Assembly (NCBI GenBank): GCA_047495785.1
Contig: JBLDXI010000009.1
Coordinates: 1,240,001 to 1,304,000, forward strand
From: Lepidodermella squamata
Lineage: Eukaryota; Animalia; Gastrotricha
Direction: 5' to 3'
Length of the DNA: 64,000 bases
Of this stretch, positions 21,301-54,517 are shown in pieces. Position numbers and translations under genes: made by a program. Position 1 is the stretch's first letter. Each line of letters begins with the position of its first letter. The notes beneath the pieces are model-generated. The model was not told the DNA's origin. It did not search any database and worked only from the letters and a program-made list of their open reading frames with translations.

Positions 21301-22015
21301 AGGCCGAAAAAGGAAAAAGAAGAAATCGCATGCGTAATCTAGGTCATTGCCCTAAATTGCAAAAACGGTGCCTTGATTGTCTTTCGGGCGCGCACAGCCG
21401 GTTATAGCGAGAAACCTAGGTTATTCATCTGTTTTTGAAATTTTCAATTATCCTGCACAACTGTTGGTCGGCACTAAATCCAGCAATATAGACTATCAAT
21501 GCTGGATAGTGCAGAAGGGGACGAAATTGAGAGCAAAAAACGAAACGGCTTCACCGGCACCCATTCGGCTCAAGAGACGGCTATAAAGAACTACACCACC
21601 AGTGCAGGTGTCGAAATAGGCGGTTAAATGACTTCTGCGACCCTTCTCAAATATTTCAATTCTATTTTTGAGAACGAGCTGGACAATGACGTCACACGAC
21701 GTGGTGCTGGATAGCAAATTGCTTGCCCAAGGCAAATTTATCCAGCACTTAACCAACGAGCCAAGCTACGATTACAGAATTTTTATGTGCATCAAACTGC
21801 ATCAAACAATTTTTCTGCATGGGACTTGGGGTGATTTTCAATTGAACTAATATTGAGGCCTACATTATCCTCGTTGTAAAATTTTCTTTCTGGGGTTTTT
21901 TATATTTTTCTTGGGTTATATCTTCAATTCCAGTTCCACGACTTGCTTTGATAATCTACAAGATAATATAATCAAGCAAATTTCGTTTCATTTTTATAGA
22001 AATTAAGATAAAGCC

Positions 22016-23732: not shown

Positions 23733-23981
23733 TTCCCTTCTTTCCTAACTAGCTATATCAATAGTCGCTTTCGCGTAAATTATAGTTTGCTATGATAGTA
23801 TCTTTTAAGATGGATGCACGAATTACAACCAGTGAATTGCCTCAGAAAAAATGACACGAAAAACTGTGCTGTGAATGTTGTAGTGGAAGTATTTTGTTCT
23901 TTCTTCGTCACTGTGACAGAACACCTTTATTTTCTTACTATTTATTTGAAAGTTAATGTTATTTAATAAACTTGATTGTAG

Positions 23982-25948: not shown

Positions 25949-26481
25949 TTTTGAACTTCATATTCCCAAGTTTGAAACACCGTATACGAAATCTGACTGT
26001 GCCCATTTAATTTGTGAATATTTATTGATAATCGCGTCATTTTCCATAGTCTTAAATGTTCTCATTTTTCTCGAAAATAAAGATTTTCTACCCAATTTTA
26101 TTTGATCATTTCGTAACCATACAATTTTCAAGAAATTTGGAACAGTGGCAGGAACGGCTGGGGAGGAGAGCGTCAATGATTGATTTATTTCCAATCGTCT
26201 AATGAGTACTTGGGCCCCGAAACACGCGCTGCGTTAAGAGATGACAAAAATAGAAAACTCCAGCGTGACGTTGACTAGAATTCATTCACGTCATCGTTAC
26301 TCGGGTCGCTGATTCCGGACGTAAACAGGGTGTTTAATGGCGATGTAATGATCCTCAGCCGCAGTCACTTGAAAATCACGCACGCATCAGGCGGTTTGAT
26401 TGCTATCGATGCTGTAGATGTGATCGAAACGCTAGCAATACCTAATTCACTGGTGAAAAACAATTTTCATGTCAAAATAAA

Positions 26482-28435: not shown

Positions 28436-28447
28436 ATTGAAAAATTA

Positions 28448-29197
28448 CCGTAACGCTGGGTAATTTTGGACAGGCTAAATTTGGACACTACACTTTATCA
28501 GCTAAATTGTGCTCGATCAGGAAGGTGAATAAAAATTTCGGTAAAAATCCTCAGATTCCTTGAGAGTTGGGCTTTCCAACGGTACCAAATACGAGGTATA
28601 ATGGAAGTTACCTGTCTTCTACAAAAATTGAAAAGGTAGGATGTCTCTAAACGTCGATTTGGGACCCCCCTAATTCCCAGTCAATCCGAATATATCTCGA
28701 CTTGAAATTTTTACCAGTGGCAACTGACACCATGAACTCTCGACTGGCAAAAAAATAATTGACCTTTGTCGACGGGAATTCGGTACAGGTGACCTCAAAG
28801 TTTAGGCCACACGTGGGGCAATTTTGGACATGATAAATGCGTTGAGAGAAAAATAGCGGGAAAAAAATTCGAATCGAGTTTGGATGACGTCATCAGTTTC
28901 TTGGCACCATGTGCGCATTTTTTTCGGAATTTCAAGAAAAGTGTCAAGTTCTGCACGCATTCCGACAATTATGAATATGCTAATGAAGTGTCCAAATTTA
29001 CCCCATAAGTGTCCAAATTTAGCCTAACCACGCACAATTTTTATAAAATCAAGGTAAAATGAGAAAATTACCAAATTTTGCCCAGAGATCGGAAGTGGTC
29101 CCCCCCTCATGCTATGAAATTTTCACATTTGTATAATTTTTTCCTGATTTTCAAGAGCTGAAAACCATGTTTTTGTCCAAAATAACCCCCATTACGG
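28448..29197. mobile_element. Non-autonomous Tc1/mariner-superfamily (pogo/Tc2-like) element, ~750 bp
   Basis: TA|ccgtaacgctgggtaattttggaca ... tgtccaaaataacccccattacgg|TA: imperfect ~24-bp TIRs with TA on both sides; internal aa(t)tttggaca / tgtccaaatt subrepeats; no ORF. Confidence 0.8.
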
Positions 29198-31133: not shown

Positions 31134-34100
31134 TTAAGGATGCTCCTGTTCAGTTGCACGAGTGCCGTGTGTCCTGGTGGAAAATAAAGATGATTCAACC
31201 TGTTCGACAGAATGAATTATTTACCTGGATAGTTTTGTGCCTTCATGCAGTCTGCCGCTTTGAATCATTTCACCTAGACCGGGCTGCTGAGAAAACGCGT
31301 AACTAGAGCCGTGTCGAGTACTACGACGCATCGGGAATCCGTGGCGATTTTTCTCCGAGACTTGTTTGTAATCACTCGGCTGTTTTTGCTCCACTCGCTG
31401 CCGGGATTTAACACGATCCGTCAAAGATACTGCGAACAGCTGGCGAACAGATCGAGTCACAACAACCGGGAACAAGCAGATGAAGATGATTAAAACGCCG
31501 CATAGCCAAAAGTTAGGTGCTGCCCATACCGGGTAATCGATACCGTAGAAATCGAACTGGAAATTAATCGCAGCGAGAATCTCAGCGAACGCGATTTGAA
31601 CGACGAAAATTGACACGAAGCTGATGACGAAAACGCCGATAAATGACCCCATTGTCAGGTGCGACATCTCGAACAGGCAGCGAAGCGTGACAACAATTAC
31701 CATCGTTGTACCTAGGGCGACGCTAAATCCGGAATGACTCGTCAAGATCGGCGAACCTTGCGGCGTATTATAATCAGCAAAACCGTACCGAATGATGAAA
31801 AATGTGACGACCGAGTCGAAAATTCCCTCACAACACGCGAGGAGAAACAGCGGTAGATTGAATAAGGCATTTCTAAGACCGGGTTGGTAAAGCTGGGGGT
31901 AGGATTGCGAGTAGTAAGAATTGACGTCTTGTTCGAACCAGCCGTAGCAGACAATCGGCGCCGCTGTGTAGAGAATGTTGTAGCACATGATGAGCCATCC
32001 GTCGTAGACCGAAAACGCCGACCAGCCGGAGTAGATACCGAACCAGAAGTGGCACATTGTGAAGGCGAAATTTTTGTAGAAGAAATAGCGCAGAAAAATT
32101 GCGATTCTTAGATACGCCCATCGACCGTGGACGAGCAGCAGTTTTTGAAGGTATCGGAACTGGGCGAAGGAAAAATCGCTGGCTAGCACGGCTTGCATGC
32201 CTTCTTGACCGGAAATGCCAACTCCGATGTGAGCAGTCTTGATCATATTTCTAAAAAAAATAGCGGAAAGTTAAAGCGTGTCCCATAAGTTCCGCAATCC
32301 TGTTGTAATTTTGCAATTTTTTGAAATTGAGCCCACCGAGAGAATCTTCCATCCTTTATCCAAGATTTGACCGAAGAAGCTAATAATTCACCGCAGAAAA
32401 CCCTGAAAACCCCGATAGCAACTGGTTCGGTAATTTTCGGTTTTTACCTGGTTGGATCCAATTTCTTCGGATGTTTTGCATGATTATGCTACGATAGATT
32501 ATGCTACGATATTTCTGGTCAAGAGATATGACTACGCTTCTCATTTTAGTTTCTGATCCCTTATCATTTAGTATTTTCTTTGTTTTGTGTTACTTTTATG
32601 GGACAAGCTGTATTTTAATGCTCTCATTTCCAGCTGATTTCAGCTTTCAGCATTCATCAGGAGATTTTTCAAAGAAAAAGTGCTTACACGTCATTTGCTC
32701 CGTCTCCAATAGCTAGGGTAACTGTTTGCTTCGATCGCCTAACTAGGCCAACAACAAGTGCTTTTTGCAGCGGAGTCACTCGGCAGCAAATCACCGTTTT
32801 ACAAGCACAGGCAGCTTCCAGCAGCTTCACCTCGATTTCTGAACCGGTTTTCAGAGCATGAAACAAACTCGCCCCAGTTATGATAAAAGCAAAACCACCA
32901 GGATGATCAGCTAGGGCTTTTTGTTTCTCCAGAACAGCCGTTATTTGTTGCTTAACCTCATCCTCAGTCTCAGCATCGACGATAAATTCTTCCATTGTAT
33001 CATCGAGCATCGAACACGAGTAACCGATATTAATAGCAGTTTCCTGCTTGTCCCCAGTCAAAACCCAGATTTTGATGCCAGCTTTTGCCAGATTGAAAAT
33101 TGTCTCAGGAACGCCGACTTGCAGCTTATCCTCAACGGCCGTCGCGCCGATTAGGCGTAGTTTTTGCTCGATTTCTTCATAACACTGGCTTAGCAAGTCT
33201 TCTCGATTTTCCAATGAAGTACTAGCCGCGTGGTATTTTGCAGACCATTCCGCCCACAGCTCATCGCTGATATCCCGAACCGCACACACCAGGGTGCGCA
33301 ATCCTGTCCCAGCAAATTCGCTCAGATGCACCTTCGTTCGTTCGACGATCGCCTTCTGAGCCGTGTGATCGTGATCAAGCAACGCTAGAACCAGCGTATC
33401 AGCCCCTTTGCAGAGCAGCCGTACCTGCCCGGAGCTTCGGTCTCGAACAATTACAGACATCCTTTTTCGGATGTTGTCGAAATCTAGGACACACAGAAGG
33501 TCAAAGGTCACATCGACCCCTAACGAGTTGATTGTAATCGAATTTGGCGTGCGGCTCTTGTAGACAAATCCGAAATTTCTCGCCGCGGAAACCAGAGCCG
33601 CCTCATCTGGTGACTGAGCCTTGTAAGCTAAAACTCCATCGGGCGTATCTGTATCCGCGATAACCGTGTGGCAAAGCGCGAGAAGGGTGAAAAAATCGCG
33701 AGCCTCTTCGGAACCACGCGTTATTTCCTCAACTAGACTCCAGTCGTAGAATTTAAAACCCGGTTCGAAATACGCTGCGTTATGTCGTGAAAAATCGACC
33801 AATTTCGCTGTCGCGTTCGGTAACAAAGCGTTCGCCGACCTTTCCGGTCTCGCATCGCCGAACATGTGGCCGTTTATCGAGCATTTGTTGAAAGTCATGA
33901 TGTTCTGAGTCAAAGTCCCAGTTTTATCCGTGAAAATATACTCGATCTGGCCAAGCTCTTCATTTAGGCTGGTTGTCCTGGCGCAGGCTGGCGTATCTAA
34001 TTCTTCGTAGTACATATCCAGATCGTGGTTGATGAACGATCGGCTCAGCACGACTCGGATGATTTCGATTGAAATGTAAAGCGATATTGGAATCACGGTC

Positions 34101-35254
34101 TGGACCAAAATCAAGAACGAAAAAACGTTCAGCACAGCGATAATGGCTGGTTGTTCCCGGACAAATGGGAACCAGAACGAGTACAACGACTTGAACTTGC
34201 GGCCGACTGTATTTTCGAAAAAGAAGCAATTGATCGCGGCGATTACCAAAATAACGAAAAGGTAGCCGAAAATGCATAAAATCAGTCGATTCGTCAGCCG
34301 GTCCAGCCTTGTTTTCTTCAGCTTTGTTTTGCCTGAATTTTGCATCAATTTCGTATCTTTTCCGGCAAAAATGATTATTCCGTGCGCCCACGTGGTGTTT
34401 CGAAGGGTGCAACCTCTTAGTAGGATGTTTTCGTTGTTCAGCGAATAGGTTTCCCCGCGCCATGATAAGCGACCCTCAAATCTGTTAAGATTGTTGTTAG
34501 GTGGCTCACATTCGATGGTTCCATCAAACGTCGCAAGCTCAGCATCGCAATCACCCATAGCCTGGGTTGCTCCCAAAGCTTGCCGTACCTTGATATTAAA
34601 ATTAGAGATTAATTAGCGTAAACAAATTGATTTTACCTTTAAATTTGTCTCGCCATCTAGTTCAAGGGTTTCCACGAAACAAAGCCCGTTGTCGTCGCTT
34701 GTAGAAAGCAGCAGCATGTCCGCCGGAACCGGGTCGTTATTCTTCACCAAAACGATTTGGCCGACTTGCAGCTGCTTCCAAGCCGAACGAACTTCACAAG
34801 TCGCCCCAGGTAGCAAGACGAATGCATCACGATTGTTGATTTTACGATCAGATCGATGCCGGTTTATATCATCGACCAAATCTTTAAATGCCGTTAGCCC
34901 CAAAACAATCGCCAGTGGAATGACAGTGACAACGGAATTCATGCTGGAGACCATAGGAATCGACTGAAGTATGACAAGAATCAGGAAATAAATATTAGCG
35001 AAACGGTGGAATTGTTCGAATAAATTTAGCGGTAAAAATGTGATGATGTTGTACTTGTACGTCTTGATTGCATTTTTGCAATATTTATGCTCAGCATTCA
35101 GCCTTTCATCGGCGCCATGAACAACACGCCGAGTTTCGGCCGGTCGCCGGCGCAGGATAACGTCGATGAAGGATCTTTTCGGCTTGTTATTATTGGGAGC
35201 AGCCGCCTGCTTCGGAAGTTCTTCCATTTCGATTGGCTGACTCGAGGCTGCCAT
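31134..35254 (-). CDS. P4-ATPase phospholipid flippase, ATP8B-like (copy 1); exons 35254-34637, 34588-32688, 32250-31225 and probable last exon 31173-31134 (unspliced stop would be at 31221)
   Basis: [46 protein letters not shown]|NMIK, YFFYKN, C-terminal YAFSQQPG. Last exon inferred from AG|gtaa and a 51-nt intron. Confidence 0.9.
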
Positions 35255-36575
35255 TTGACCGAAAATCGCTTGTCACAATATTATGGGAAATAGAATGTCA
35301 TTGATGCACATATATGCAGTCGAGTTTTTTACTACAGCTAATTTAGGCCACCCTGACAAAAGAATCCTCCGCACTGAATCATCATCACTGCTAGATACAT
35401 TTTCCGCAGCCATAACTTTATGGGGCTATATATTTGTTAATTTCAACTCTTTTTACCTCTGGCATGGTTGAGAAATTTCTTATATCAGCTGCGATCGAAC
35501 TCCGATTCAATGACCTGTGAATGATTCATCTCGATCGATGATTAGCCTCCTTAAAAATCTCAAACAAGCGAGAGGTCCGTTTTCATTTGACTGCTTGGTT
35601 GTTTGCTCTACGCATTAGGTGTACCTCTATTGGCATCTCATGGTCTGTCAAGTAAGTCCTGTATGAGGCAATAGGAATACTTGCGATTCTTCGGTCATGG
35701 TGCTGTGAAGCCGTCTTTCTAGGTACAGGTGAAAAATATTCGGTACAATAACGCCAGGCACGAACACAAGCTTCGGTTTTCTTTATTTTTGCGTGAAATC
35801 ATGCCGCATTTTTTTTTATCAGAAATAACAACGATATGCGCCTCTCATCATCATCAAATAAACTAAAATTTGTATCCAACAAAATTGAAAGAAGTTTGAG
35901 AAATTTTTAAAAGTAAAATAGCAGGTATTTACAGTTCACGACACGCGTAAAGAGCCCAACCGTAGAATAGAGAAGAGAGATATCGAAGAAGATCGAAGTA
36001 GCGAGCGTAGATGAAGTATACGGTCAGAATAATGAATCACAACTGTCGAACAGCTTTTAATCATGGTCATCATGCCGAAGAAATTAACGATATGATTGCT
36101 CAATAAATAGTTTCAATTTCTATTTTCAATCGCGTAGTAAAAGCCAAAAGCCATTTTCAGAACTTTGCTTATATACCGCAGTCTGTATCTCAAATACAAC
36201 GAAGTTACTATATGAACTTATTAAATACCGCACAATATAAAGTGAATACGTAGTAGTGTCTTTGACTTGATGAAATCGGGTTTAATCATACATCTTTACA
36301 TTATTTAGAAAAGCACCGGCTACTCAAGTGAATAATGATCCAGACTTCAAATTTATATCATTACGGAGTTTTATCGGGTTGAGAAAATTCGGTTTTATCT
36401 TCATAATATATATTATAAAAGCAGTGAAGAAGAAGAAGTTGAATGGAATTCTTTTTTTTATACAGTTCGCAATCCATCACCGGTGCATCATGAGAAGTTA
36501 TCTGATTTCAAATAGGAATACGTTAGCTTTTCAAAAATAAAAATATGCAAAAAATCGAGCGAACAAAGGCTTGCT

Positions 36576-39500
36576 TCAAAAGAAGGTCATGCGATAGTCT
36601 TGTTGTGACACCCGTTTCGGCCTAGGTTTGGCGGCGCCGGCATGCAAGGTGCCCAACTGATCGGACTCAGGCTCGTCAGCTTGAAACGCAGCGTTGCCGT
36701 AGTACTGAAGCTTTTGGCCATTCGGGTCGCTGTCAGGCGGCGCCGGCGTTTGTTGCTGCTCGGGTATATTGTTGAAATACGCCTTCTGACCGCGGGCCGA
36801 TGCGCGGCCTGTCATTTGACGCGTCGCCGTAGCGCCACGCATGCGCGCACTTTCGCGCAGTACACCCGACTGAATGAGGTCACCCATGCCGGGTTGCTGT
36901 GAGAACGCATAGCCAGAACCGAAGCGGCTGCGGCGGATCGTCGAACCGCCTCGCCTGACTGCCAACTGGTTGTAGTCGTCCGGTTGCTTCTTTTCTGTTC
37001 GCTGGAGTGCGCGAACTCGGTCAGTGAGAGATGTCTATAAAATAGCTAATTGGTACCAAATTAATTTTATTATAAAAAACCCACCTTAACGACTTGAGAA
37101 AATGCTCGAACAACGATGACAGGGATGCAACACGCAGCCATGATGACAGCGAAGCAAAGCCAGAAAACAGGCGATGTCCATACCACGTAAACAATACCGT
37201 AAGAATCGAACTGGTACTGCATAGCTGCGAGAATTTCAGCGAACGCGACTTGCAGCACGAAAACAGCGGCGATGCTGAAAATGAAGATGGAAACAAAGTT
37301 GAGAACAGTCCAGTAGGACATCTCCAGGGCGCAGCGGATTGACACGACAACGACGAGTGTTGTACCAACGGCGCATCCGAACGCCGAGTGGCTGGTCAGA
37401 ATGTTGGAGCCATCGAAATGCATCGAGTCGCCAAAGCCGTAGCGCATGATGAAAAAGCTGACGGCAGAGGCGTAGAAGCCTTCGAAGCAGGACGTAACAA
37501 AAAGGGGTAGGTTGAAGAACGCGTTTCGTAAACCGGGCTGATACAACTGGACGTAAGTTTGCGAGTAGTAGGAATTGACATCTTGCTCCACCCAGCCGTA
37601 GACTATGATAGGCGTTGCGGTGTAGATCAAATTGTAACACATGATAAGCCACTGGTCGTACAGCGAGTTGGCCGACCAGCCGCAGTAGATGCCGAACCAA
37701 AAGTGGCCGAGTGAGAAGGCGAAATTTTTGTAGAAAAAGTAGCGCAGAAAAATTGCGATGCGTAGATACGCCCACCGGCCGTGGACGAGCAGCAGTTTTT
37801 GAAGAAAGCGAAATTGGCCGAATGAAAAATCACTCGCCAGAACGGCTTGCATACCTTCTTGACCAGAAATACCAACGCCAATATGCGCTGTTTTAATCAT
37901 ATTCCTGAAAAATGGGGAAAAAATTAATTAGCATAAAATTCGAATATTCCAAATTCACAAGAAGATAAACTATTTTATTAAATTATTATTGATTAAATTA
38001 TTTTTATTAATTATTAAATTAATAAATTTGTTAATTTGAAAAATAGCGGTTGATTTCATGAGACTTACACATCGTTTGCGCCATCCCCAATGGCCAACGT
38101 GACAGTTTTCTTGTTCCGCTTGACTAGATCGACAACCATAGCCTTCTGCAGCGGCGTGACTCGGCAGCAAATAACGGCCTTGCAAGAGCATGCGACGTCG
38201 AGAAATAGCTGTTCCAACTTTGGGTGCAAGGCATGTACCAGGCTAGGCCCATTTATCACAAGAGCGAAGCCGTCGAATTTCGAAGGAACCGGCAAGGGCG
38301 GTGGCCGCTTTAACGCGGCACTCGGTAGGCCACCGCCTGGCATCTTCGGGTCACCACTCAATGGCGCTAATTGCGAGATGGGCGCCTGAACTGATTGCTG
38401 GGTGAAATAAGTTCCGTGGCTCAGTTGCGTCTGGATCTTATCCATCGACTGGCGAGTTTTGATCAGTTGCTGCTTCACATCGATCGGCATCTCGGCGTCG
38501 ATGATGAACTCTTCCATAGTTTCAGTCAGCATATTGCACGAATAGCCGATGTTGATAGCGGTTTCTTGCTTGTCGCCAGTCAATACCCACAATTTTATAC
38601 CAGCTTTTGCCAAATTGAAAATTGTCTCAGGCACGCCGTCTTGCAGCTTGTCTTCAATCGCAGTGGCTCCGATTAAATAAAGCCCGTTTTCGATTTCTTC
38701 GTAACAAGCCGCAAGTTTCTCATCACGGCCCTCTAGAGAAGTGCTATAAGAAAAAATTGAGATATTTCGAAGAAATGTTGGAGGATATCTTACCTTGCCA
38801 TATGATACTTTCGCGACCACACCGCCCACATATCGTCGTCGATTTCCTTAGTGCCCAAACACAACGTTCGCAGGCCAGTTCCGGCGTATTCATGCAGCTG
38901 AGCTTTGATCTTCTCTCCCATATCACGCGACCGGCGATCGATCAGTCCCAACACCAGGGAGTCAGCGCCTTTGCATAACAAACAACGGCGGCCCTCGCGC
39001 TGCACGATGACTGACATGCGTTTCCTTACGTTGTCGAAATCGAGGACGCAAAGTAACTCGTAGACCCGTTCAACGCCCAGAACGCTGATTGTAATCGATG
39101 TTGGAGTTCGGGACCGGTAGACGAAACCGAAATTTCTCGCCGCCCCGACAAGGGCCGCTTCATCTGGGGACTGGGCTTTATACACCAATTTATCATCTTC
39201 GTCGTAATCAGCGATAACTGTATGGCACAACGCGATAAGGGTCCAGAATTCATGCACGTCCTTCTGGCCCTTTTTGACGTCATCGAGAAGGGATTTGTCG
39301 TAGAAATTGAACCGAGGGTCGAAATAATTAGGCTCGTGATCGGAGAAATCGACATGATGCTGCTTCCTATTTTGATCTGTCAACGGTATAACTCGACCGT
39401 TTTTGTCCCGAGGATCGCCATACATGCGCCCCATAATGGAGCATTTGTTAAAGGTCATGATATTTTGCGTCAAAGTCCCAGTTTTGTCCGAGAATATGTA

Positions 39501-41060
39501 CTCGATCTGCCCGAGTTCTTCGTTCAGCGTTGTAGTTCGCGCACAAGCCGCCACGTCGACCCCGTCGTAGTACATGTCCTTATCCTGGTTGATGAAGACT
39601 CTCGACAGGAACATGCGGATGAATTCGACGGAGACGTAGAGAGAAATCGGAATCAAGGTTTGGATTAAAATTAAGTAAGACAACATGGTTATCAGAGCGA
39701 CAATAGCTGGTTGGTTGTTCGCAACCGCGTGCCATAATGAGTACTGTTTGAAGTAAGTCCCAATAGTACTTTCGAACACGAAACACAACACGCAAGCGGC
39801 AATCAGCAGCGCGCCGAGAAGTCCGAGAATGCCTTGTTAAAAAATTAATAAACTTTTTACTTAATTTAAGGTTCAAAGCTTACATAGAATAAGCTTATTG
39901 GCTAGGATATCGATTTGAGTACGCTTCATCGTCGTTTTACCGGCGTTCTTCATCAACTTAGTATCCTGTCCGGCGAACAGGATGAGTCCGAAAATCCACG
40001 TTGTATTGCGCAGGGTGCAACCTCGCAGGATTACGTTATCATTGCCGATAGAGTACTTTGCACCCAGCCACTCGAGGCGGCCTTCGAATTTGCTCAAATT
40101 ATTGTTCGGCGGTTCGCATTTAATTAAACCGTCGAAGAGTGCCAACTTTTCACGCTCATCTTTCAGCTTCTGGCTATCGGCCAACGCCTGGCGAACTTTC
40201 AAATTCGTCTCACCGTCGAGTTCAAGAGTTTCAATAAAACACAGCCCGTTTTCGTCGCTGGTCGACAGAATCAAAATATCAGCCGGGATGGGCTGGTTGC
40301 ATCGGATCATAACGACTTGGCCCACTCGAAGGCGCTTCCACGGGGTCGCGGTCAATTTCCGACCGCCGGGTGTTATCAAATGAGCATCTCGATTGTTGAT
40401 TCGGCTATCGGACCGGTGCCGTTGGATATCATCAATTAAATCTTTTAGCGCCGTCAAGCCAAGCACAACAACTGAAAAATTAAAAGGTTAAAAATGGCAG
40501 AAAATAAAAGATATTACCGAATGGAATAATTGTAGTCACTGGATTCACCGGAGAAATCAGCGGTATCGACTGTGTTATAAATTACGATTATAGCTAATTA
40601 TTTGACGGTCAGGAATAAAATAACTTGCCTGAAGGATGACTAGAATTAAAAAATAAATATTGGCGAACCGGTGGAACTGCTCGAAGAGATTAAGTGGCAA
40701 AAACGTAATGACATTGTAGCGAGAAGTTTTGATTGAATTATCACAGTATTCAAATTTATCATTGAACTCGGGATGGGCGCCACGGACTATCCGCTGCGTT
40801 TCAACCTTCTGCTTCTGTGGTATGATGTCATCCTCAGATTTAGCGTTCGGTTGAAACGGCACAGGGGGCGGGACGGGCGCGCCTGTTCGAGGCCGCGCTG
40901 ATTTCGGGCCATTCGCGCCTGTCGTCGGCCGGGCCGAGGACGGAGGGGCGCCGTAGCGAGATGTCGCCGACGGCGGCGGCTGTTGCCGGCTAACGGCCGA
41001 CGGCATCGGGTTTCGGGAAACAGCAGAAGTAGGACCATTATAACCACCGGTAGAAGTCAT
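36576..41060 (-). CDS. P4-ATPase flippase, ATP8B-like (copy 2); exons 41060-40629, 40569-40518, 40471-39884, 39832-38794, 38743-38069, 37904-37085, 37034-36576
   Basis: All P-type/P4 motifs intact; C-terminal SGYAFSQ; first coding intron has a GC donor (CAG|gcaagt). Confidence 0.92.
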
Positions 41061-43808
41061 CTAAAAAACTCGAGAATAATGACCTGATTTAATTGAGCAA
41101 TTGACTGACTCACCGATTTATGGTCACTATTAAGAAGTTATTACAGCATTACTATTTGATTATTCTGCCGAAAAAAATCGGCTGTGTTTTTTATGCCTTT
41201 GCGCACCAGGTGTATGGGCGAAGAAGCCGTTGTCGTTCACTTGTTCGCGCTTCGTCGCCTCCGCCTTGTATATCTTCTATTAGTAAATGTTTTGCACCAG
41301 TGTCTTCGCAACGATCAGAAAAACGTCGAAGGTGGCGCGATCGTTATTTTCTCCGCTCCTCTCACAGCAGCAGCAGCAGCGGCAGTCGTCTTATTTTCTA
41401 TTCCGCATGCCAAACATAAGAAGTGTTAACAATAATTTTTTATACTCCCTATACAGTAGTTGTATTAACATATGCACATAGGTATATACACTCACGAAAG
41501 AGAATAAAAGAGTAGGAGAAGAATGGAAAATGTGTCTCATGGTAGATGTTGCGATTAGTAATGCGATGAAGGCGAACAGCAGGTGCTTTGTGCATTTTTT
41601 ATTGCATACCTGTTCGGGCGGCGACTTTTTTGTCATATATTATGCGACAACGAGCGTTTTTTATTGCTTCGCGCCCGCTCGAAGAAGAAGGTCGATAAAC
41701 GCGGGATCGAAGCGTGAAAAAGTATTATCATTTGACAGCAAATAAAAAATTATTTGATCATCACCGAAAGGGATTGGTTTTTTATTGCTGGTAGGGAAGC
41801 CAAGATTTTTCTTGAATTAATTCGAAAAGTTTTCAATAAAACTGTCAGCAATTTGTTCAAGCCAAACGCTAGGCGAGAAAAAAGGCGTAAGTAAACAGAA
41901 GATTTCATCAACGAAAAATAAATATGGAAAAAATTATAATAATAATATATTGGATGTCAACCGCTCCTCATACGGCGTGTGAAATGCATACGAGAGTGTA
42001 GGTAGCCTATCTCGCCTGTAATATTTAGAGCAAATAAAGATGTAGGTGCAGACCGAAGGCGACTTTTACACTATATGCGGCAAATTTTTCGCGGCCAGCG
42101 CATGCTCGCAAAGTATAAGATGACGAGTCGCGAGCGCGGGTACATTTGCGTTTTTTCGGGTCGATAAATACGTACCGCTTCAGCATACATGTAGGTATAG
42201 GTATAAGCACATTCATGCGCTTAGCAGCACGCATTCGCCGCGGATGCGCTACTCACAGCAGTAATAAACCTGTATGTAATAACATACATATTATATATTG
42301 CTCGAATGTACGTATTTTTCAATTGAGATATTACTTATAGTAAAGGTAAGCGCGGCCTCTCCTGGTCGAAAAAATGCGTGTCATCTTGTCGGCGCCAAGC
42401 CAAGCGGCAGCGAAACACGCTCATTCTGTAAAACCAACGACGATCGATTAGAAAAAACAAATAGAAAAAAAACGATGAAACTTTTTTTACTGTTGAGTAA
42501 GCAAAGGTGGCTGTTTTTTCTAGCTCTTTTTTTACACACTCAAGAAAAAAACGGTAATGCACCGAAAATTTCAGTCTCATTACCATAAAACTTGTACACG
42601 AAAAAAGGCACGTGACTTCAAACCAAGATTTTACTTCATTTTTTCAACAATTCAGCGAAAGACTGAAAAGCGCGCAGAAGAAAAAAATATATAATTTGTC
42701 TCCTCGGTTTTTGCATGGCAATAAGCAGCTCATCTTCATCATCAGTTTTTACAATAATAATAATTTTTCGTTTCACCTTGAAAACAAAAAGCGGCAAATC
42801 GCCACCGCAGCCGATTCAAATTTGTATACATTCAATTGGTTTAATAAAGCGAGGCTATATAGCAAAATAAAACATTTTTTTTTCAGCCACTTCCTCGTCA
42901 TTTGCTTCATATCAAATAGAAAGATGATTCGAGCTCTAATAATGTTGTGTATGTGATGATAACCGGGTTGCATCATTTTTCGATATCTTTTCGTTTTTAG
43001 TATTCGATAGATAAGTTATATAAAAATTCGTAATATTTTCAGGCAATCGTGTGACCGTTCGAGTTGTTCGACGACGTTGTTTTTTCACGAGCGGAATTTG
43101 TGCCAAATACCGGTGGGCTGAGACTTTGCCGCTCGTCATCGGAGTAAACAACCGCCTCAGGTGGGGCTTGTCCGACCGAATTTCGTTTCAAGCGAGGTGG
43201 CGGTTGTTTCTTCGCCGCCGTAGCAGTACTACACGAGAATTGCCGGAAAATAGTGTCAGTGAAAAAGTTACAAAAAACCACGGGTTAAATTCGATCACAA
43301 TAATTTAGTAGTAATAATTAGTAGAAAAATAGTTCCAAAAGACGCTTGTTGATATTGTGAAAAACACTCTGCATATGAATTGACGGTGTCACCGAGTTAT
43401 TCGAATCGTGTGAAGGCGCGCTCTCAGCTAAGGCATTAGTCGTCCACACACATCATGCACCAAGCGTGAGTTGTATCTATGAATAATTTCTTCGCAGTGT
43501 CACATATCAATCGCTCTCGCATTGGCTTCAGACGCCAGCTCCGGAAAGCGCCCTAAGTTACAGACAAAAATTAAGTCCATAATTGTTGCTAGGGCTATAT
43601 ATAGATAGCTCTTCTTCAAATCGAAACTTGGAAAAATAAGCGGCATTCAAGCAAAAATTCAAGCGAAATCAAGGGAAAGAAAGCATGCGTCATGAAAAAA
43701 ATGAAAGCGTGCGGGTAATTTTTCACAATTAAACAAGCGTCTAAATTACATTAAATTCGATTCAAACGAAATTTGAATCGAATCGAATGGGGTAGTTAAT
43801 TAGGTTTT

Positions 43809-46800
43809 TTACCTAGGTCTCGACGAAGTGCTTTCGCGAAGAACACCACTTGAAATCATGCTTCCAATGCCGGTTTGTTGAGCGAAAGCAAAGCCTGAGC
43901 TCATTCGGCTACGTCGCAACGCCGAAGCGCCACGCCGGACAGCCAGTTGATTGTAGTCTTCAGGTCGCTTCTTCTCCGTCATCTGTTTAACCTGGCAGCG
44001 GTAGGACAGCGGCGATCGGATGAGGACCCAGAGGTAGCGGATGAAAAGAACCGGTAAGCAGCATAGGGTGACTGCAACTAAGCTCGATAGCCAGAAGTCG
44101 GGCGATTTCCAAACAGCGTAGGCTATACTATAGTACTCAAATTCCTGCTCGAGGTAAGCCAGCAATTCGGCGATGATGATTTGAATAACAAAAATGGCTA
44201 GGATGCTGAGGAAGGGCGTGAAGTTGAGCGGCGTCCAGTTGGACATTTCCATGGCGCAGCGGATCGTGACGACAAACGTTGTTGTCGTGGCAACGGCGAC
44301 GCCAAGCGCGTGGTAACTGCTCGTCACGCCCGTCCCATCCGGCAGGTTGAATTCAGCAAAGCCATAATGCATGAAAAAATAACAGACAACTGAGGCGATG
44401 AAACCCTCGGCGCATGACAGCAGGAAAAACGGCAGGTTGAATAGAATGTTTTTCGGACCGGGGAAGTATAATTTCGGGTAGGTTTGCGAGTAATAAGCGT
44501 TAACATCCTGTTCTATCCACGCGTAGTTGATAATAGGCGTGGACGTGTAGATGACGTTGTAGAAGGCAATGTACCACTGGTCGTAGACGGAGGCCGCTGA
44601 CCATCCGCAGTAGATGCCAAACCAGAAGTGGCATAGTGTGAAGACGAAATTTTTGTAGAAAAAATAGCGCAGAAACATGGCTACTCGAATGTAGCCCCAG
44701 CGGCCGTGTACTAACAGCAGTTTTTGAAGGAAACGAAATTGCCCGAATGAGAAATCACTCGACAGAACGGCTTGCATACCCTCCTGGCCGGATATTCCAA
44801 CGCCAATGTGAGCCGTTTTAATCATGTTTCTGTAAAATAGGGATAAATTAGCATAAATTAAAATATTAAATTAAATTAAAATTCGCACATTGAAAAAATT
44901 TAAATTTAAATTGACCGTTAACAAGTGAAAACTGGAGTTGGCGACATTTTTGACATCGTAGATTTTGATGCCGGCTCAAGATCAATGAACGAGGAAGAGA
45001 TTTTGATAGTGGTCAGGGTTGCTGAGAAAATGGACTTCAAAGTTCACGGATAAAAATTGCTAATTTCGAAAAATGCGCGAATAAAAAATAATTTAGTTTT
45101 TTATTGCATCATTTCAAAATTCCCCACGCAATAAATTCTGATGTTATTTTCTTATGCACAGTTGATATTTCTAAGGGTAATCTGAGGTGAGGAATCTCGC
45201 TATATATTTTAAAATTTTGTTGGGATCAAGATAGTATATCTACGACAACCAGAATCAATAACACTTTTCAGGGCTGCTCTGGGGTTTTTCGTATTTTAAG
45301 GCGGATGGGAGCCGACTAGAGGTCTGAAATTTGAGCATTTCAAATCCTCAAGAAAAACTGAGTCAGAAAACCTTGGAATCCAAGAATTGTCCCAGTTGGA
45401 GTGAAAACACTCTTTGCGATTTGCTGGAAAATTCAGAAAATTCGCCAAACCCCAATTTTCACTTATTTTCGGTCAAATTCAGTTTTTTATGGCATCAGTT
45501 AATAATTCGTCGCGCAATAAAATCTGATGGTCTTTTCTTATGTGCAGTTAGGATTTTTGGGGGTAATCTGAGGTAAGGAATCTTGCTAGATGTTCAAAAA
45601 TTTCGATGGAGTCAAGCTAGTGCTTCCACGTCAACCTAAATCGACAAGCCTTTTCGGCGACACTTTGGGTTCTCTCGTCTTTTGAGGTGGATGGGAACCT
45701 CCAAGAGGTCTGAATTTTTTAAATTCAAAATCCTCAAGAAAAACTTAGTAAGGACATCTAGGTATCCAAGAATCTTCCCTCTTCAAGTCAAGACTCTTTT
45801 TGCTGGAAAATACAGAGAATACGCTAAACTCCACTTTTCACTTTTTAACGGTCAATTTTTTTTAATTTTCCAAACTTTTAGACTCGTGAAATTCGAATTA
45901 GACTTACACATCATTGGCACCATCGCCAATCGCCAGGGTCAAAGCGTTACATTTCCGCTTGACCAAATCGACAACTTTGCCCTTTTGAAGCGGCGCGACA
46001 CGGCAGCAGATGACAGCCTGGCAAGAAGTGGCCACGTTGAGGAACAATTCCTCCATTTCATCGGTTAGGGCGTGGAATAGGCTGTGGCCGTTGATGATCA
46101 ACGCAAAGTGCTCCGAGGTATCAACTGGTAGCCGCGCTGTAGCCGGTCGACTCCTAGCAGCCGCTTGATTATTCATATTATTTTGAGACGACGAGTTGTT
46201 CAACGCAGCGTTCATCGAAACAGGTACCGTAAAACTAGTTTCCTGCATCGATTTGCTGATGTCATCAATCTGAGTACGGTAAAGCCGAAGCTGCCGTTCG
46301 ACGCCGGCGTAGTCTTCCGCATCGACGATAAACTCTTCCATTGTGTCGCGGAGCATGTTGCAAGAATAGCCGATGTTTATAGCCGTCTCCTGTTTGTCCC
46401 CGGTCAGAACCCAAATTTTGATCCCGGCGCGGGCGAGGTTGTAAATCGTCTCTGGGACACCCTCTTGCAGCTTATCTTCCACAGCCGTCGCGCCGATTAG
46501 GGTCATATTTTGCTCGATTTCGATGTAGCAACCATACACCTGACTCTCACGGTTATCTAAAGAGGTACTAGCCCTTTGATACCGCGTGTTCCAGTCATTC
46601 CATTCCGCATCGGTCAGGTCTCTTACAGCGCAGCAAAGGGTTCGCAGGCCACTGCCGGCGAATTCGTTCAAATGCGCCTTGGTTCGCTCAACCATGTCAG
46701 ACTGGCCATCTTTGAGCAGTTCGAGGATGCAGGTATCAGCGCCTTTACATAGCAACCGCTTTTTGCCGTCTTTTTGAACAATTACGGACATGCGTTTACG

Positions 46801-49002
46801 AACGTTATCGAAGTCGAGGATGCAGAGAACGTCGTAGGTAACCTCTTTGCCGAGAACTTCGATCGTCATCGAACTCTGGGTTCGACATTTGTAAACGAAG
46901 CCGAAATTTCTAGCGGCCCCAACTAGGGCTGCTTCATCAGGCGATTGAGCTTTGTATACCAACTGGCCGTCCTCTTCTACCTCGGAATTAATCGTATGGC
47001 ACAGTGCAAGTAGGGCGAAAAAGTCATGCACCTCGGATATGCCATGTCGCACATCGGCTAGCAAAGTCGGGTCGAAAAACTGGAACGATTTCTCCCAGTA
47101 TTTCGGCTCGTGCTTCGAGAAATCGACCTTGTACTTTGCAGCGTTTCGATTCGTAATTAGCACCACTTTACTTGTATCGAAATCGCGAGCGTCGCCATAC
47201 ATTTTCCCAGCGATTGAACACTTGTTAAAAGTCATTATATTCTGGGTTAACGTTCCGGTTTTATCCTAAAATAAAATTGTGTGTAATTCAGTTTGCAGCT
47301 TTCAGTTTTTCCAACTTACAGAGAAGACGTATTCGATTTGGCCGAGTTCTTCGTTGAGGGTAGTTGTCCGAGCACACGCCGGTGTGTCATTCGGCTCGTA
47401 GTACATATCGAGGTCCCCGTTGATGTAACCACGGCTTAGCATAATGCGGATGAGCTCGAATGTGACATAGAGAGATATCGGAATAAGCGTTTGAATCAAA
47501 ATGAGGTACGAAAAAAATTGCAGGACACCGATAATTTCCGGATTGATCTTGGGAACGTCCATCCACAACGAGTATGCCTCCTTGAAATTGTAGCCTTGGC
47601 CTTTTTCGAAGAAAAATCCCAAAACGGCCGCGATAATGAGCAAAGTTGTCAGCAAGCTGAAGATACCTGAAATTAAATTATTTGTAAAAAAATTTTAAAA
47701 TAAATTTAAGGCGCATACTAAGCAGAAATAGGTTGGCTAGCCGGTCGATTCGTGTCCGCTTCAGAACAGTTTTACCAGCATTTTTCATCAATTTCGTCTG
47801 TCTGCCGGTGAAAATGACTAAACCGGTAGCCCACGCCGTGTTTCGGATTGTGCAGCCCCGGTATAGGACAGCGCTGTTGTTCAGCGACAATTGCTCACCT
47901 TGGTAGTCAAGGCGGCCTTCAAATCGCGTCAAATTGTTATTCGGCGCCTCGCAATGAACCTCCCCGTTGAATGTCCCTAGCTGTTGCAGGTCATCGCCAA
48001 GCGGTTGCGTTTGAACCAAAGCTTGGCGGTACTTCAAATTCGTCTCACCGTCGAGATCGGCGGTTTCGATGAAGCACAAGCCGCTGCTTTCACTTGTCGA
48101 CAGCAGTAACAAATCGGCTGGGATTTTTTCGTTGTTTTTCAGCATAACGATTTGGCCGACTTGAACCTCGTGCCACCGGACTGATTTGAGCGTAAAATCC
48201 GGCGCCAGCACCGTCGCCTTGTGATTGTTGATCTTGTTGTCCGATTTATGCCGGAAAATATCGTCAATGCCATCTTTTAAGGCTGTTACGCCCAATACGA
48301 AGGCTATAAAATATTGAGTCAATAAAAAATTGAATTAATTTTAAATAATTACCTAAAGCAAGGGCTGTAGACAAAGGACTAACTGGGGAAACAACCGGAA
48401 TTGCCTGAAATTTTTCAAATTAATTTTAATTTTTTTTAAGCTGGATTTTCGAATTTTACCTGAAGAATCACCAGTAATAAAAAATAGACATTGGCAAATC
48501 GAAGGAATTGTTCGAACAAATTGAGTGGCAGAAACGTTAATATGTTATAACGCGAGGTTTTTATCGAATTATCACAGTAACGAAATTGGGCGTTGAACTC
48601 GGGCGCCGAGCCGCGAACAATGCGCATCGTCTCCTCGTTGTCATCGCGCCCCAGCAGTTGCCGGAAAGCCCGCTGCAGCGACCACGGCTCTTTTTTCACC
48701 GGAGCCGCCGCTGCAGCCGGGGCCGGGGCCGAGGTCGAGCCATTCGCCGGGCGGGCGGTCGTTTTATCCGCATCTGGCTGTTGCTTCGCGGCTGCTCGTT
48801 GCACAGCCGCTTGCTGCTTGTGGGAACTGACCATTTCGCCGGGCGAGACGCTGAGCAAATGCGGCCCGTGTAGCTTGCTGTGACCGGGTGGGGTGTCGAG
48901 GCGGCCACCGCTCGACGGCGCCGGCGATGGGGTGGTAGATTTAGCGATATCCTTGGAATGAATTGCATTTGCTGGGCCGTTTTCACCGGTTTCCTGCGTC
49001 AT
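43809..49002 (-). CDS. P4-ATPase flippase, ATP8B-like (copy 3); exons 49002-48460, 48404-48353, 48303-47719, 47666-47320, 47265-45908, 44829-43809 (a further small 3' exon is possible)
   Basis: DGETNLK, PISL, FS|DKTGT across an intron, GDGANDV, SGFAFAQ tail. Confidence 0.9.
45128..45880. repeat. Diverged tandem duplication (two copies, ~386-bp period) inside the largest intron of P4-ATPase copy 3
   Basis: Matching anchors gcaataaa.tctgatg (45128/45514), gggtaatctgaggt.aggaatct (45175/45561), aaatcctcaagaaaaact (45342/45728). Confidence 0.8.
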
Positions 49003-50863
49003 ACAACGAGGATGATAATTGCGCTACTATACACAATAATAATTATTTTATCTATAAAATCTTCTGCAATTATTACAAAAAATAACTTGCACCGAGTTGA
49101 CACATACAAAAGGTGAGCATAAAAATCTAAAAAACAACTCGTAAAAAAAGCGCTGCCCGGTGCTTGTCATCTTACATTCATGTACGTCAACGCCCCATAC
49201 TTTTTCTCAACTAATAATATTAATGTTGAAGCTGAGAGTTTTTCCTAATCCTTATACCTTTACATGTATAGTATAATATTAAGCTTAAGTGAAAACGCGC
49301 AAAAACTAAATGAACTTGACGTGTCTCGTTCAAAAACAGGGTGTAATGTATCTTGGCGACGCTCCCAGTTCTCCCGTGCGTTTTTTCTACAATATCAAAG
49401 ACGCGCGACTACTGCACTTGCCTCAATGAATAAAATGATCCAACATGTATCACGTGAATTTAAGGTAGTATATTTGATAATTATGACCACGTACTTGACG
49501 CGCGAATTTGTGAGCTAAAACACGCCTTTCTCTGGCGAGTTGTATAATTGAAAACTCGTGTGACTTGCTGGAAAAATTAATATTTAATAAGAAATATGCA
49601 GCGATGAATTAATTATATTATGTGCTGATTTTAATGCAGAGGGATCTACCTAAGTGAAGCAACCACGTAATTTCTAAATTGATATATATCTGGCTTAATT
49701 TATTGAGCTGATGCGTGAGATTATTACGCGGGTGACCACAAATCATAAACAAAAATTAATGCTACAAAATTGAAAAATTAGGAAATAGGACGATTTGTTG
49801 CAGACTGTCGACACATCTACATTGATATTAGCCGATATAGAAAAAACCGAAGCACCTGTAATAACGTTATTATTACTATTGAGAGACTAGCTTATTATAA
49901 TATTGGCACTATCGCTTTTTTTGCGGCAGTAGTCATATGCGTATACAGGTAAATAGAAAGGCTTTCACCATGGCTGTGTCACTCACAATAATATAATTTT
50001 TTATTGCCACACAGTCACGCAGCGTGTGTCATACTATGCAGGTATAATAGTAATTACATATATATAGTCTCGCGAAGCAGAGGGGAGGCAGAAAATTGTC
50101 ATGGCAACCGCGCACAAGACGCAGACACCGTATGAGCGCGGCGTTTTTTGCACATCGTTATATGTATATAAAACATCCGCATCGCTATAAAACGCCGATA
50201 CGTTTACGTGCACTGGATATACCTTCATACCTGCGCTGTTATATACGCTCGCGCACCGGAACTTGCTAACGGCGGAGTCATGTATAATAATCCTTGCAGA
50301 GCTAAAAAATTCAACCTCCCCTCCCTCATCCGCAGCTCGCTTTGTGATGGCGGCATAGCGTGACAACTATCTCATGACTGTCCACCCCTGTATCGTTGCG
50401 TCATGGCTGATTTTTATTGCGCCCTGATATGCTTTAAAATATGTCAAGCCTCGCAGAAATTTCAGGCGGAAAAAAAACGGTTGAGTAAACTTCAATTTCG
50501 CATACTCATTTATATCGCATGGCACACGATTTTTTTGCAGGTAAAAATCGATCTCTAAGTGTTTGCACTGCCAAGTGTACATAGGAACTGGGCGCTGTGT
50601 TAAGTGCTCAATTTAGCGCCATAGCAACGCGCGAAACGATGCGAGTGCAAGCCTAATCGACGTCGAAACAGCGCTGTGTTCGAAAATTGATAACGAAATT
50701 AAAACGCCGGTTGAAGACCCACGCAGCACCTATGGGGAGCACTCGAATTCGATCTACCTATCCTATGGAATAAATTCATTTTATTTGCCAAAAAAAACCA
50801 CCGAACACATTTTATTTTGCCAAAATTAAAATTCAATGATTGGGAAAAAAATGAGTAGAAAAA

Positions 50864-53800
50864 TCAGGCTTGAATTTGATGAACCATCGCTTTCTTTACG
50901 CAGTGCCGGAATACAACTCGATACGCCAGGGAAGGCTGGAAAATTTAATTAAAAATAAACAAATTTTCGAGCTGAAATAAATGGCCCACCTTGAAAGTTA
51001 TCATGAGCATTCGATAAATTATCACCGGAGCGTTGCATGTTACGATACATAACGCGGTTACTAGCCAAAAATTTGGCGATGTCCAAACAGCAGGGGCGAT
51101 TCGGTTATACTCGAACTCGGCAGAATTGCCGGGTAATTTTGTCAAAACTTCCGCTGTGATTAACTGGACGATGAAGCAAAATACGATAGCTAGAGGTACA
51201 ATGAAGCTTAAAACGTTCCAAGTGCTCAATTCCAGACCACAGCGAATAGTTATGACGATGACGATGCTGGTACCAAAGGCGACTCCAAACGCCGCGTGGC
51301 TAGTTGTGATATCATTGCCGTTCGGGTACGTTAAGTCGCCGTATCCGAACCGTAATAGGAAAAACGTAACCGCCGAAACGTAAATTCCTTCAGCTATGTA
51401 GATTAAAAACGTTCTCAACGTGAAAATACTGCCCGTCAAGCCTGGGGTGTATAATTTCGGGTATTGTTGGCACAACTTGGAATTGATTCCCTTTTCAAAG
51501 ATCGCCAGGTAGAGAATAGGAATTGCTGAGTATAGGGCATTGTATGCTCCTATGTACCAATTGTCAACGGTCGAAGTTGCAGACCAGCCGCAAAATATCG
51601 CAAACCAAAAGTGGCACATGACATACGCCAGAGTTTTGTAGAAGAAAAAGTTAAGGTAAGTCGCCATTCTCAGGTAATTCCATCTGCCGTGAACTAGCAA
51701 CAAACGTTGAAGGAAGCAAAATTGCGCCAAGGCATAGTCACTAGCCAATACAGCTTGCGTTCCTTCATTGCCCGAAATTCCCACTCCAATATGAGCGGTT
51801 TTTATCATGTTTCTGAAATTAATAAAATTATTTAGATTTTTGAGCCAATGAGTAAGCTTACACGTCATTTCCGCCATCGCCAATCGCCAGAGTTACGGCA
51901 TGTTCCCGTAGCCGAACTGCCTCGACGATTCGGCCTTTTTGCAGTGGCGCTAGGCGGCAACAAATCACGGCCTGGCAAGCGCAAGCCACATTCAAAAAAT
52001 CATCAGCCAAATCTTCGGATAAGGCATATTGCAAACTGTCTCCAGTTATAACTAAACCAATCGGGTTGCGGTCAGTTTTAGCTACGACCATCTCGGCTTC
52101 TCTCAATTTTGACGTCACACTCGCCAAATCATCCGCGTCGATCTGGATAATTTCTGTCGAGTCGTTTAATAAATGACAAGATTGGCCGATGTTAATAGCA
52201 GTTTCGGGCTTGTCACCAGTTAGCACCCAAATTTTGATACCAGCAAGCTTCAAATTAGCGATCGTTTCAGGCACACCGTCCTGCAACTTATCCTCTACCC
52301 CAGTCGCGCCTAGAAGGGTTAAATTCCGCTCAATCGACTGGCAACATTCGAAAATCCGCTCTTCCCGATCATGCAAGGCCTGACTAGCCTGTTGAAACTT
52401 GGCGTTCCAATCAGCCCATTCAATATCGTCGATATCGCGATAGGCACAACATAAGGTTCGAAGGCCATCTGTCGCAAAATCGTGCAGATGCCTATGAGTT
52501 CGATCGATCATATCTTGCTGGTTGCTATGAAGAATCGCCATCACCGAAGAATCAGCCCCTTTGCATAGGACCCGCCTCTTCCCATTATCGTCCTCGACTA
52601 CAACCGACATTCGCCTTCTCACATTATCAAAGTCAAGAATAGCCAACAGTTTGTAAGTCCGCTCCTTACCCTGGATTTCGAGGGTTAAGGCGGAGTGAGT
52701 GCGATTTTTGAAGACGAAACCGAAATTACGAGCAGCTGAAACCAACGCGGCTTCATCCGGCGATTGGGCTTTGTAAATCAGCTGGCCGTTATCGTCGATT
52801 TCCGAATTCAAAGTGTGGCAAAGTGCGAGTAATACAAAGAAATCGTGGCAATCGCCATTTCGCGCTCCATTGACCAGGGTATGGTCGTAGAATTTGAAGT
52901 TACTCTCCCAATATTTCGGCTCAACCTTCGAGAAATCAACGCGATGTCGAGCTTCATTTTCCGGGTGAATTTCCACAATTTCGCCTGTTTTACGATCGCG
53001 AGGTATGCCGTACTCGATACCATTGGCCGAACACTTGCTGAAGGTCATCAAATTCTGAGTTAAAGTGCCAGTTTTGTCTGAGAAAATGTACTCAATTTGA
53101 CCGAGATCTTCGTTTAGCGACGTCGATTTCGCCTGAGCCGGCATGTCTTTCACCGGGTCATACATCTCCAAATCGCCATTAACAAATCCTCGGCTTAGGC
53201 AGAGTTGGATCAACTCTATCATCGTATACAGCGTTATAGGTAAAATTTGTTGCATGAGGATTAAATAGGAGAAAAATTGCAGAACTGCGATCAAACTAGG
53301 GTTGATTCCTTTAACCGGCATCCACAGGGAGTAGGCGTCTTTAAACTTGCGGCCAACACCACTCTCGAAGATGAACCCCATAATGGAGCAGATGATGAGT
53401 GTAACGATCAAAATTACAAAAATGCTGATGAAGTATTTGTTGGATAACTTCTCCATACGCGTTCGCTTGTACATAGTTATACCGGCATTTTTCATCAGTT
53501 TCGTCTGCCGGCCTGTGTAAACAACAAGACCGAACGCCCATTCCGTGTTTCGAAGGTGGCAACCGCGAAGGGCTACGTTGTTGTTAACAATTGAAATCGT
53601 CTCATTCCGCCACGTCAAGCGACCGGCGAAGCGGGTAAGCAGGTTATTAGGCGCATCGCACTGAATTTCTCCATCAAATTCAGCGAGCTTTTCAATATCG
53701 CCACAAATCGAAACTTGAGTCGCATTCACAGCCTGGCGATACTTCAAATTCGTCTCGCCGTCCAATTCAGCAGTTTCGATGTAGCAAATTCCGTTTGGCT

Positions 53801-54517
53801 CGCTCGACGATAGCAGAACCATATCGGCGGGAAATGCGTGATTTTTCGACATTTTCACAATGTCACCAACTCGAATGTCCCGCCATTTGATGTTATGCAA
53901 TGAAGCTTCACTTCCCTTGTCGCGTTTGGCAACAAACGCTGGCTGGTTGTTGATGCGTTGGTCCGATCGATAACGCATAAAATCGTCGATTCCGAACCGT
54001 ATTGATGTTATTAGCATCACCGCAGCTGAAAATATTGAAATATTTCGGTACCACTTGAGTGGAAATTTAGCTACCTAGGGAAAGCGCTTGAGGATATGGG
54101 GTGATTGGCGATATTGCCGGAATAAACTGTTAACAAAAATTCGAAAAAATTATCATAATAAACAGGATTTGTTTATAATCCCACCTGCAGTAATACTAGC
54201 ACGAGGAAGTAAATATTGGCTGTTCGTAGGAATTGTTCGAAAATAGTTAATGGAATGAAGGTGAGAATGCTGTAGCGTGATGTTTTGATCGCATTGTCAA
54301 CGTGAAGCGGATTGCGCGAATTTGCTCGAACAATCCGGGAGTCTTCGTGCCGATCTTTCGGCTCAAACAGCTGGTAGAAAAGCGTCTGCAAGCTGCGATC
54401 GCTGAATTTAACCTTATGATGAGGATGTTGGTTGGCTTTCGTCACCGACGCTTTTCGATTCGACGGCACTGCCTCCATTTCGAAAGCTGATGTAGTCGGC
54501 ATTATTTTTAGTTTCAT
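50864..54517 (-). CDS. P4-ATPase flippase, divergent ATP8B-like (copy 4) with a short C-terminus; exons 54517-54185, 54126-54075, 54025-51862, 51812-50990, 50935-50864
   Basis: [38 protein letters not shown]; the start could also be the Met at 54502. Confidence 0.88.

Follow-up and report, generated by a model that had tools for sequence, protein, structure and literature searches.

What becomes of the substrate range of a lipid flippase when the residue that holds the lipid headgroup, constant in every other member of its family sampled here, gives way to the one found at the same place in transporters of other lipids? This question is raised by a stretch of 64,000 nt from the gastrotrich Lepidodermella squamata (contig JBLDXI010000009.1), which is the window analysed here and the frame of all coordinates given without another scaffold name. 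The window carries four tandem P4-ATPase genes, named A to D, on the minus strand from 31.2 to 54.5 kb, and each of them encodes a glutamine four residues before the proline of the fourth transmembrane segment (TM4), a position referred to here as Pro-4 and equal to N397 in human ATP8B1. To judge from the comparisons reported below, asparagine gave way to glutamine at an early stage of this lineage, ahead of the duplications that produced the paralogues, and the new residue was kept under purifying selection in all nine genes that descend from the event. A to D are intact genes of the ATP8B type, and on balance we think it probable that the headgroup site of their products has been remodelled and that the preference has moved away from phosphatidylserine (PS).

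The position is a well-studied one. Glutamine occupies it in yeast Dnf2 (Q655) and in ATP10A (Q370) and ATP10D (Q381), and in Dnf2 and ATP10D it is needed for the transport of glucosylceramide (GlcCer), which is abolished by a change from Gln to Asn (Roland et al., 10.1101/373712). In human ATP8B1, a broad-specificity flippase handling phosphatidylcholine (PC), PS, and phosphatidylinositol, N397 makes contact with the serine when PS is bound, and the N397Q mutant has a lower PS-stimulated ATPase activity; the authors of that study describe glutamine as the residue that PC transporters conserve at this place (Cheng et al. 2022, PMC9168909). The same change, in an ATP8B backbone, therefore alters lipid handling. 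Reviews consider the entry-gate features that distinguish PC, PS, and GlcCer transporters to be still unclear, and a literature search returned no paper joining P4-ATPases and gastrotrichs. A sequence-only reading of this locus had proposed that the four proteins gained GlcCer transport by convergence, and its premises about the site stand: Asn is aligned at Pro-4 in human ATP8B1 (LNTMVPISL) and ATP8A1 (FNNLIPISL) in an alignment of PDB entries, and the literature confirms Gln in Dnf2, ATP10A, and ATP10D, together with its role in GlcCer transport.

The four genes and their motifs

A crinoid ATP8B protein served as the tblastn query with which the genes were located in the window, and exon models were built by spliced protein-to-genome alignment. 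Database searches were made per single exon or exon alignment, and the joined spliced proteins served for alignments and trees. The reading frames of all four models are open. Gene A (31221..35254, 1182 amino acids) has three exons (35254-34637, 34588-32688, and 32250-31221); gene B (36576..41060, 1354 amino acids) has seven (41060-40629, 40569-40518, 40471-39884, 39832-38794, 38743-38069, 37904-37085, and 37034-36576); gene C (43809..49002, 1301 amino acids) has six (49002-48460, 48404-48353, 48303-47719, 47666-47320, 47265-45908, and 44829-43809); and the divergent gene D (50945..54517, about 1138 amino acids) has four (54517-54185, 54126-54075, 54025-51862, and 51812-50945).

A six-frame scan recovered the TM4 motifs on the minus strand exactly where the sequence-only reading had placed them. 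Gene A reads VQTVIPISL (34079-34105), with the Pro-4 glutamine encoded by CAG at 34100-34102; genes B (39639-39665) and C (47470-47496) both read IQTLIPISL with a CAA codon; and gene D reads MQQILPITL (53229-53255), in which the Pro-4 codon is again CAA, a second glutamine stands at Pro-3, and PITL replaces PISL. The motifs of the first transmembrane segment (TM1), LQSIP, LQSIP, LQAIP, and LQFIP in A to D, were likewise correctly read, provided that introns are removed. The motif is unbroken only in gene A (34955-34969) and is interrupted directly after the glutamine in the other three, which after splicing read LQ/SIP, LQ/AIP, and LQ/FIP. In gene B this is intron 1 (40570-40628), of the GC-AG type with the donor GCAAGT; introns at the matching position are present in C and D, and gene A has none there.

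All four proteins contain the catalytic motifs DGET, DKTGT, TGDK, and GDGxND (GDGGND in gene D) and the TM4 signature P(I/V)(S/T)L, and so belong to the P4-ATPase superfamily. The Pfam domains Cation_ATPase, Hydrolase, and E1-E2_ATPase were matched on exons of the array, and PhoLip_ATPase_N and PhoLip_ATPase_C were recorded on the orthologues described below. A C-terminal autoinhibitory motif of the GYAFS type, (G/S)(Y/F)AF(S/A), is present in A (SYAFSQQ), B, and C and in their orthologues, and is absent from D. The 3' end of gene D is uncertain, as an alternative model has an intron at 50936-50989 and a stop at 50864; in both models (50864-51100, minus strand) the gene terminates shortly past the tenth transmembrane segment, and a search of the following 1.9 kb revealed no GYAFS-type tail.

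Most introns of the array are about 50 bp long. Gene C has one of 1078 bp (44830-45907, minus strand), against about 40-165 bp for all other introns of the array, and it may harbour an insertion. Two in-frame introns proposed by the aligner, at 38344-38391 in gene B and 46154-46192 in gene C, are free of stops and have weak splice sites, and both were kept as coding sequence. Regarding expression, a 2015 sequencing run (X2) yielded cDNA-like contigs that bear the SMART cDNA oligo, with a coverage of gene B biased to its 3' end. Three of the gene B introns (37035-37084, 37905-38068, and 38744-38793) are missing from these contigs exactly at the predicted GT..AG borders, so that gene B appears to be transcribed and spliced.

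Family placement and age of the glutamine

Apart from the genes of the window, only five ATP8B relatives were found to carry the Pro-4 glutamine, and all of them come from a related species known here through metagenome scaffolds. Together with A to D they make up a group of nine genes, termed here the Q-clade, in which the residue is present in every member. L002a is the orthologue of gene A (68% identical), L001b that of gene B (75-78%), and L001a that of gene C (65-68%). The orthologue of gene D, L083d (also P0216), came from an exhaustive search among representative proteins; it reads QQLLPVTL and ends without a recognisable tail. Adjoining it, L083e (L083:14329-17463, plus strand) is a fifth, divergent paralogue with LQTLLPLAL in TM4, PLAL replacing PISL, and YKT in the fifth transmembrane segment (TM5). 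A run of N in scaffold L083 falls inside this gene. The tandem order of the orthologues on the scaffolds is the same as in the window, which bears out the earlier description of an amplified lineage.

The internal tree of the Q-clade is ((A,B),(C,(D,E))), where E is the L083e line, and every gene is joined to its orthologue from the second species, so that the duplications, and hence the glutamine, predate the species split. The glutamines of the window are accordingly a single inherited event and not four independent ones, and the residue has outlasted at least four duplications as well as the split. Between orthologues the proportion of synonymous differences (pS) is about 0.8, meaning that synonymous sites are saturated, and that of nonsynonymous differences (pN) is 0.18-0.24, which together indicate long purifying selection. 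Intact frames, conserved motifs, and a pN far below pS rule out that A to C are pseudogenes. Gene D is intact and accelerated, with 39 of 263 invariant columns changed against 12-17 in other members of the clade. The step from asparagine (AAY) to glutamine (CAR) takes two nucleotide substitutions and passes through histidine or lysine. A protein of Balamuthia mandrillaris (P0251) has histidine, one of these two intermediates, at Pro-4 (LHSMVPISL).

The proteins belong to the ATP8B family, as a fast-evolving, lineage-specific branch. Among relatives with solved structures ATP8B1 scores highest (565-595 bits), followed by Drs2 (480-545), ATP8A1 (473-516), and Dnf1/2 (404-470). This best match and the tree placement tie A to D to animal ATP8B (ATP8B1, ATP8B2, and ATP8B4, which are P4A-ATPases working with CDC50), as do the TM1 motif LQxIP with the equivalent of Q131, PISL in TM4, YFFYKN in TM5, the catalytic motifs, and, in A to C, the autoinhibitory tail motif. 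The sequence-only reading described the rest of each protein as ATP8B-like; further motifs of this kind are present in A to C, and gene D deviates, having FFFYKT, GNEGTQAV, and GDGGND and lacking a YAFS-type tail.

In a phylogeny of 53 proteins the Q-clade is monophyletic (support 100) and groups with metazoan ATP8B proteins bearing asparagine at Pro-4, hereafter N-type (support 99). Fungal Dnf-like and Capsaspora proteins with a Pro-4 glutamine, which stand in for the Dnf/ATP10 side of the trees (animal ATP10 and ATP11 lie outside the sample), form a distant group, and the A to D proteins are much shorter than the fungal representatives. In an approximately unbiased (AU) test on a set of 26 rows, uniting the Q-clade with these Dnf-like glutamine proteins costs 125 log-likelihood units (p 9.6e-7). 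A grouping with ATP10/Dnf is thereby ruled out, as the sequence-only reading had anticipated, and the kinship goes no closer than that of fellow P4A-ATPases. When sponge, coral, and the rotifer Seison were added under a site-heterogeneous model, the Q-clade was nested in metazoan ATP8B above the sponge (support 99/95) and was weakly paired with the long-branched rotifer.

The state of Pro-4 across the family was surveyed in 197 proteins from two word searches, covering molluscs, arthropods, echinoderms, an annelid, a brachiopod, a nemertean, a nematode, amphioxus, and vertebrates. Asparagine is found in 195 of them, mostly as NTVV, and all 195 named nearest homologues are of the ATP8B type; the other two (P0001 and P0002) are gene fragments on scaffolds of one ENA metagenome, and gene models built on these scaffolds are the source of L002a, L001b, and L001a. 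The representatives of a sponge (Sycon), a coral, Seison, and a choanoflagellate also have asparagine. A scan of JGI metagenomes gave no further members of the Q-clade, the best match being 49% identical, and every ATP8B-like contig in it reads NT(V/L)V. The possibility that glutamine is a common state in invertebrate ATP8B is thus excluded for every group sampled (flatworms are outside the sample), in agreement with the sequence-only reading: all 195 other ATP8B proteins have asparagine, as do sponge, coral, and rotifer. Moreover, N397 is the sole alignment column in which all 43 aligned N-type ATP8B proteins agree and all nine members of the clade share a single different residue.

Taken with the trees and the AU test, these data uphold the proposal that the glutamine of the Q-clade arose independently of that in Dnf and ATP10. 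A further independent appearance is found in an environmental P4-ATPase of a distant, protist-like group (L047:386-3961, plus strand), which reads QNFVPISL and whose nearest relatives have threonine or serine at Pro-4.

The lipid-entry site and its probable substrates

The other positions of the lipid-entry site were compared as well, with ATP8B1 numbering and residue roles from PMC9168909 and PMC11225554. Q131 in TM1 is retained in all nine members of the clade. The residue that follows it, mostly leucine in N-type proteins, is serine, alanine, or cysteine in six copies, alanine in L083d, and phenylalanine in gene D. In the second segment (TM2), T143 is retained only in gene B and its orthologue L001b, with valine, serine, or proline elsewhere in the clade, and T144 is retained in the A, B, and C lines and changed in the D/E line. 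Valine at Pro-1 of TM4 has become isoleucine or leucine in most copies; S403, in the PISL motif, is retained in the A, B, and C lines and changed in the D/E line, as is N958; and S994 of the sixth segment (TM6) is alanine in the A, B, and D lines. Unlike the animal ATP8B proteins at large, the Q-clade thus combines glutamine at Pro-4 with changes at T143, Pro-1, S994, and TM5, on a long branch of tandem paralogues. Gene D departs further, with QQILPITL in TM4, YKT in TM5, and PQ instead of TT in TM2, in addition to the altered T144, S403, and N958 and the missing tail.

Could these changes have turned an ATP8B backbone into a flippase for GlcCer or another hexosylceramide, which might compensate for a missing ATP10? 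The independent origin of the glutamine, its retention in nine of nine genes, the small residue (S, A, or C) that follows the TM1 glutamine in six of the nine copies and recalls the alanine of the Dnf GA motif, and the change of S994 to alanine with other entry-site changes all speak in its favour. The Pro-4 glutamine is, however, necessary and not sufficient for GlcCer transport, which also needs a TM1 motif (GA, NF, or NW) and a TM6 motif (LT or LI). Whereas Dnf1/Dnf2 and ATP10A/B/D have Gly-Ala, Asn-Phe, or Asn-Trp in TM1, A to D have Q-S, Q-S, Q-A, and Q-F. According to a review, a glutamine at the first of these positions appears to prevent GlcCer transport, and the change of glycine to glutamine there turns Dnf1/2 into PS/PC flippases and removes GlcCer transport. 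Furthermore, ATP10A carries the Pro-4 glutamine and yet strongly prefers PC. We therefore regard a glycolipid flippase as a rather unlikely outcome. The sequence-only reading had also taken the lack of a QQ pair in TM1 as an argument; this does not hold, since the first glutamine of the pair is the critical one, and it is kept in all copies (LQxIP, corresponding to Q131 of ATP8B1). In TM6, the pair that we take, by a motif alignment of our own, to match L1265/T1266 of Dnf2 reads I-M, I-M, I-A, and I-G in A to D, against I-S in N-type ATP8B.

The most likely effect in our analysis is that the preference has shifted from PS to headgroups of the PC type or to others that are bulky or uncharged, because N397Q alters ATP8B1, because GlcCer transport would need more motifs, and because the TM1 glutamine is kept in nine of nine genes. 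The headgroup-anchoring asparagine was replaced by glutamine before the duplications, and the replacement comes with companion changes in the entry site: the small residue after the TM1 glutamine in most copies, the T143 position, isoleucine or leucine at Pro-1, alanine for S994 in the A, B, and D lines, and TM5. Since every catalytic motif is retained, the pumps would remain CDC50-dependent, ATP-driven inward flippases, and their headgroup pocket would probably be retuned from PS towards bulkier or uncharged headgroups. Phosphatidylcholine-type lipids would be the likeliest substrates, with hexosylceramide as a possibility. Gene D and its relatives, in which the site is changed much further and the autoinhibitory tail is lost, may have another substrate or another regulation.

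The glutamine may also have been fixed by chance on a fast branch, being held since then by epistasis, with a substrate range close to that of an ordinary ATP8B. Such neutral or compensated drift would fit the long stem branch of the Q-clade (0.38-0.4 changes per site), the similarity of glutamine and asparagine, and the broad specificity of ATP8B1, and it would fit other replacements of conserved columns throughout the clade: among 449 columns with a conservation of 90% or more across N-type ATP8B, 17 are replaced in every member, as are 8 of the 392 that are at least 93% conserved in the 43 N-type proteins. Nevertheless, asparagine holds the site without exception from sponge to human, the change required two nucleotide substitutions, through histidine or lysine, and the same mutation measurably changes the activity of human ATP8B1; in addition, the glutamine has come unchanged through four or more duplications and through a species split whose synonymous divergence (dS) is saturated. 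Drift is for these reasons an explanation to which we give little credence, about as much as to a glycolipid flippase.

Several points nonetheless weigh against a shift away from PS. As many as 177 of those 449 columns vary somewhere in the clade, and with so many differences on a long branch a lone change from asparagine to glutamine could be compensated drift. The two residues are chemically close and ATP8B1 already has a broad specificity, so that the effect may be quantitative only. The evidence for expression covers only the 3' part of gene B; that run X2 represents RNA is itself a guess, supported by the removed introns and the SMART oligo. Finally, the placement within Bilateria is unstable, as an AU test under LG+G4 rejects a position of the Q-clade with spiralian or protostome ATP8B. 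We read this rejection as a long-branch effect, and the Q-clade may alternatively represent an older paralogue. Under either placement the trees indicate that asparagine is ancestral and that glutamine was derived independently of Dnf/ATP10.

Neighbouring genes and bearing on flippase biology

Other features of the window lie outside the array. Upstream of it, at 10900-28500 on the plus strand, are at least five tandem cytochrome P450 genes, the large exons of which (11358-12206, 15655-16503, 17553-18584, 22902-23732, and 25007-25654, all plus strand) match the Pfam family p450. An open reading frame of 687 amino acids at 5220-7283 on the minus strand encodes in its C-terminal half, according to Pfam, the whole of a Ser/Thr protein kinase domain.

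As for the flippases, a close parallel to the Q-clade is the engineered N397Q mutant of ATP8B1 (PMC9168909), in which the identical exchange was made in a protein of this family. That protein is a point mutant made in the laboratory, whereas the change in the Q-clade is natural, ancient, and accompanied by other changes in the entry site. The locus thus amounts to a natural experiment, in which an ATP8B backbone, with an N397 otherwise invariant from sponge to human, has borne the glutamine typical of PC and GlcCer transporters through several duplications, and in which the paralogues pair this glutamine with differing changes at T143, T144, S403, N958, and S994. It bears on whether a Pro-4 glutamine is sufficient in a scaffold other than Dnf/ATP10, on whether a TM1 glutamine excludes GlcCer, and on which co-changes are required. 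If hexosylceramides were the substrates after all, glycolipid recognition would have been solved a second time in nature, here with a TM1 glutamine in place, and the pumps might replace a lost ATP10. The finding does not describe a new kind of system; for flippase enzymology it offers a modest but concrete lead.

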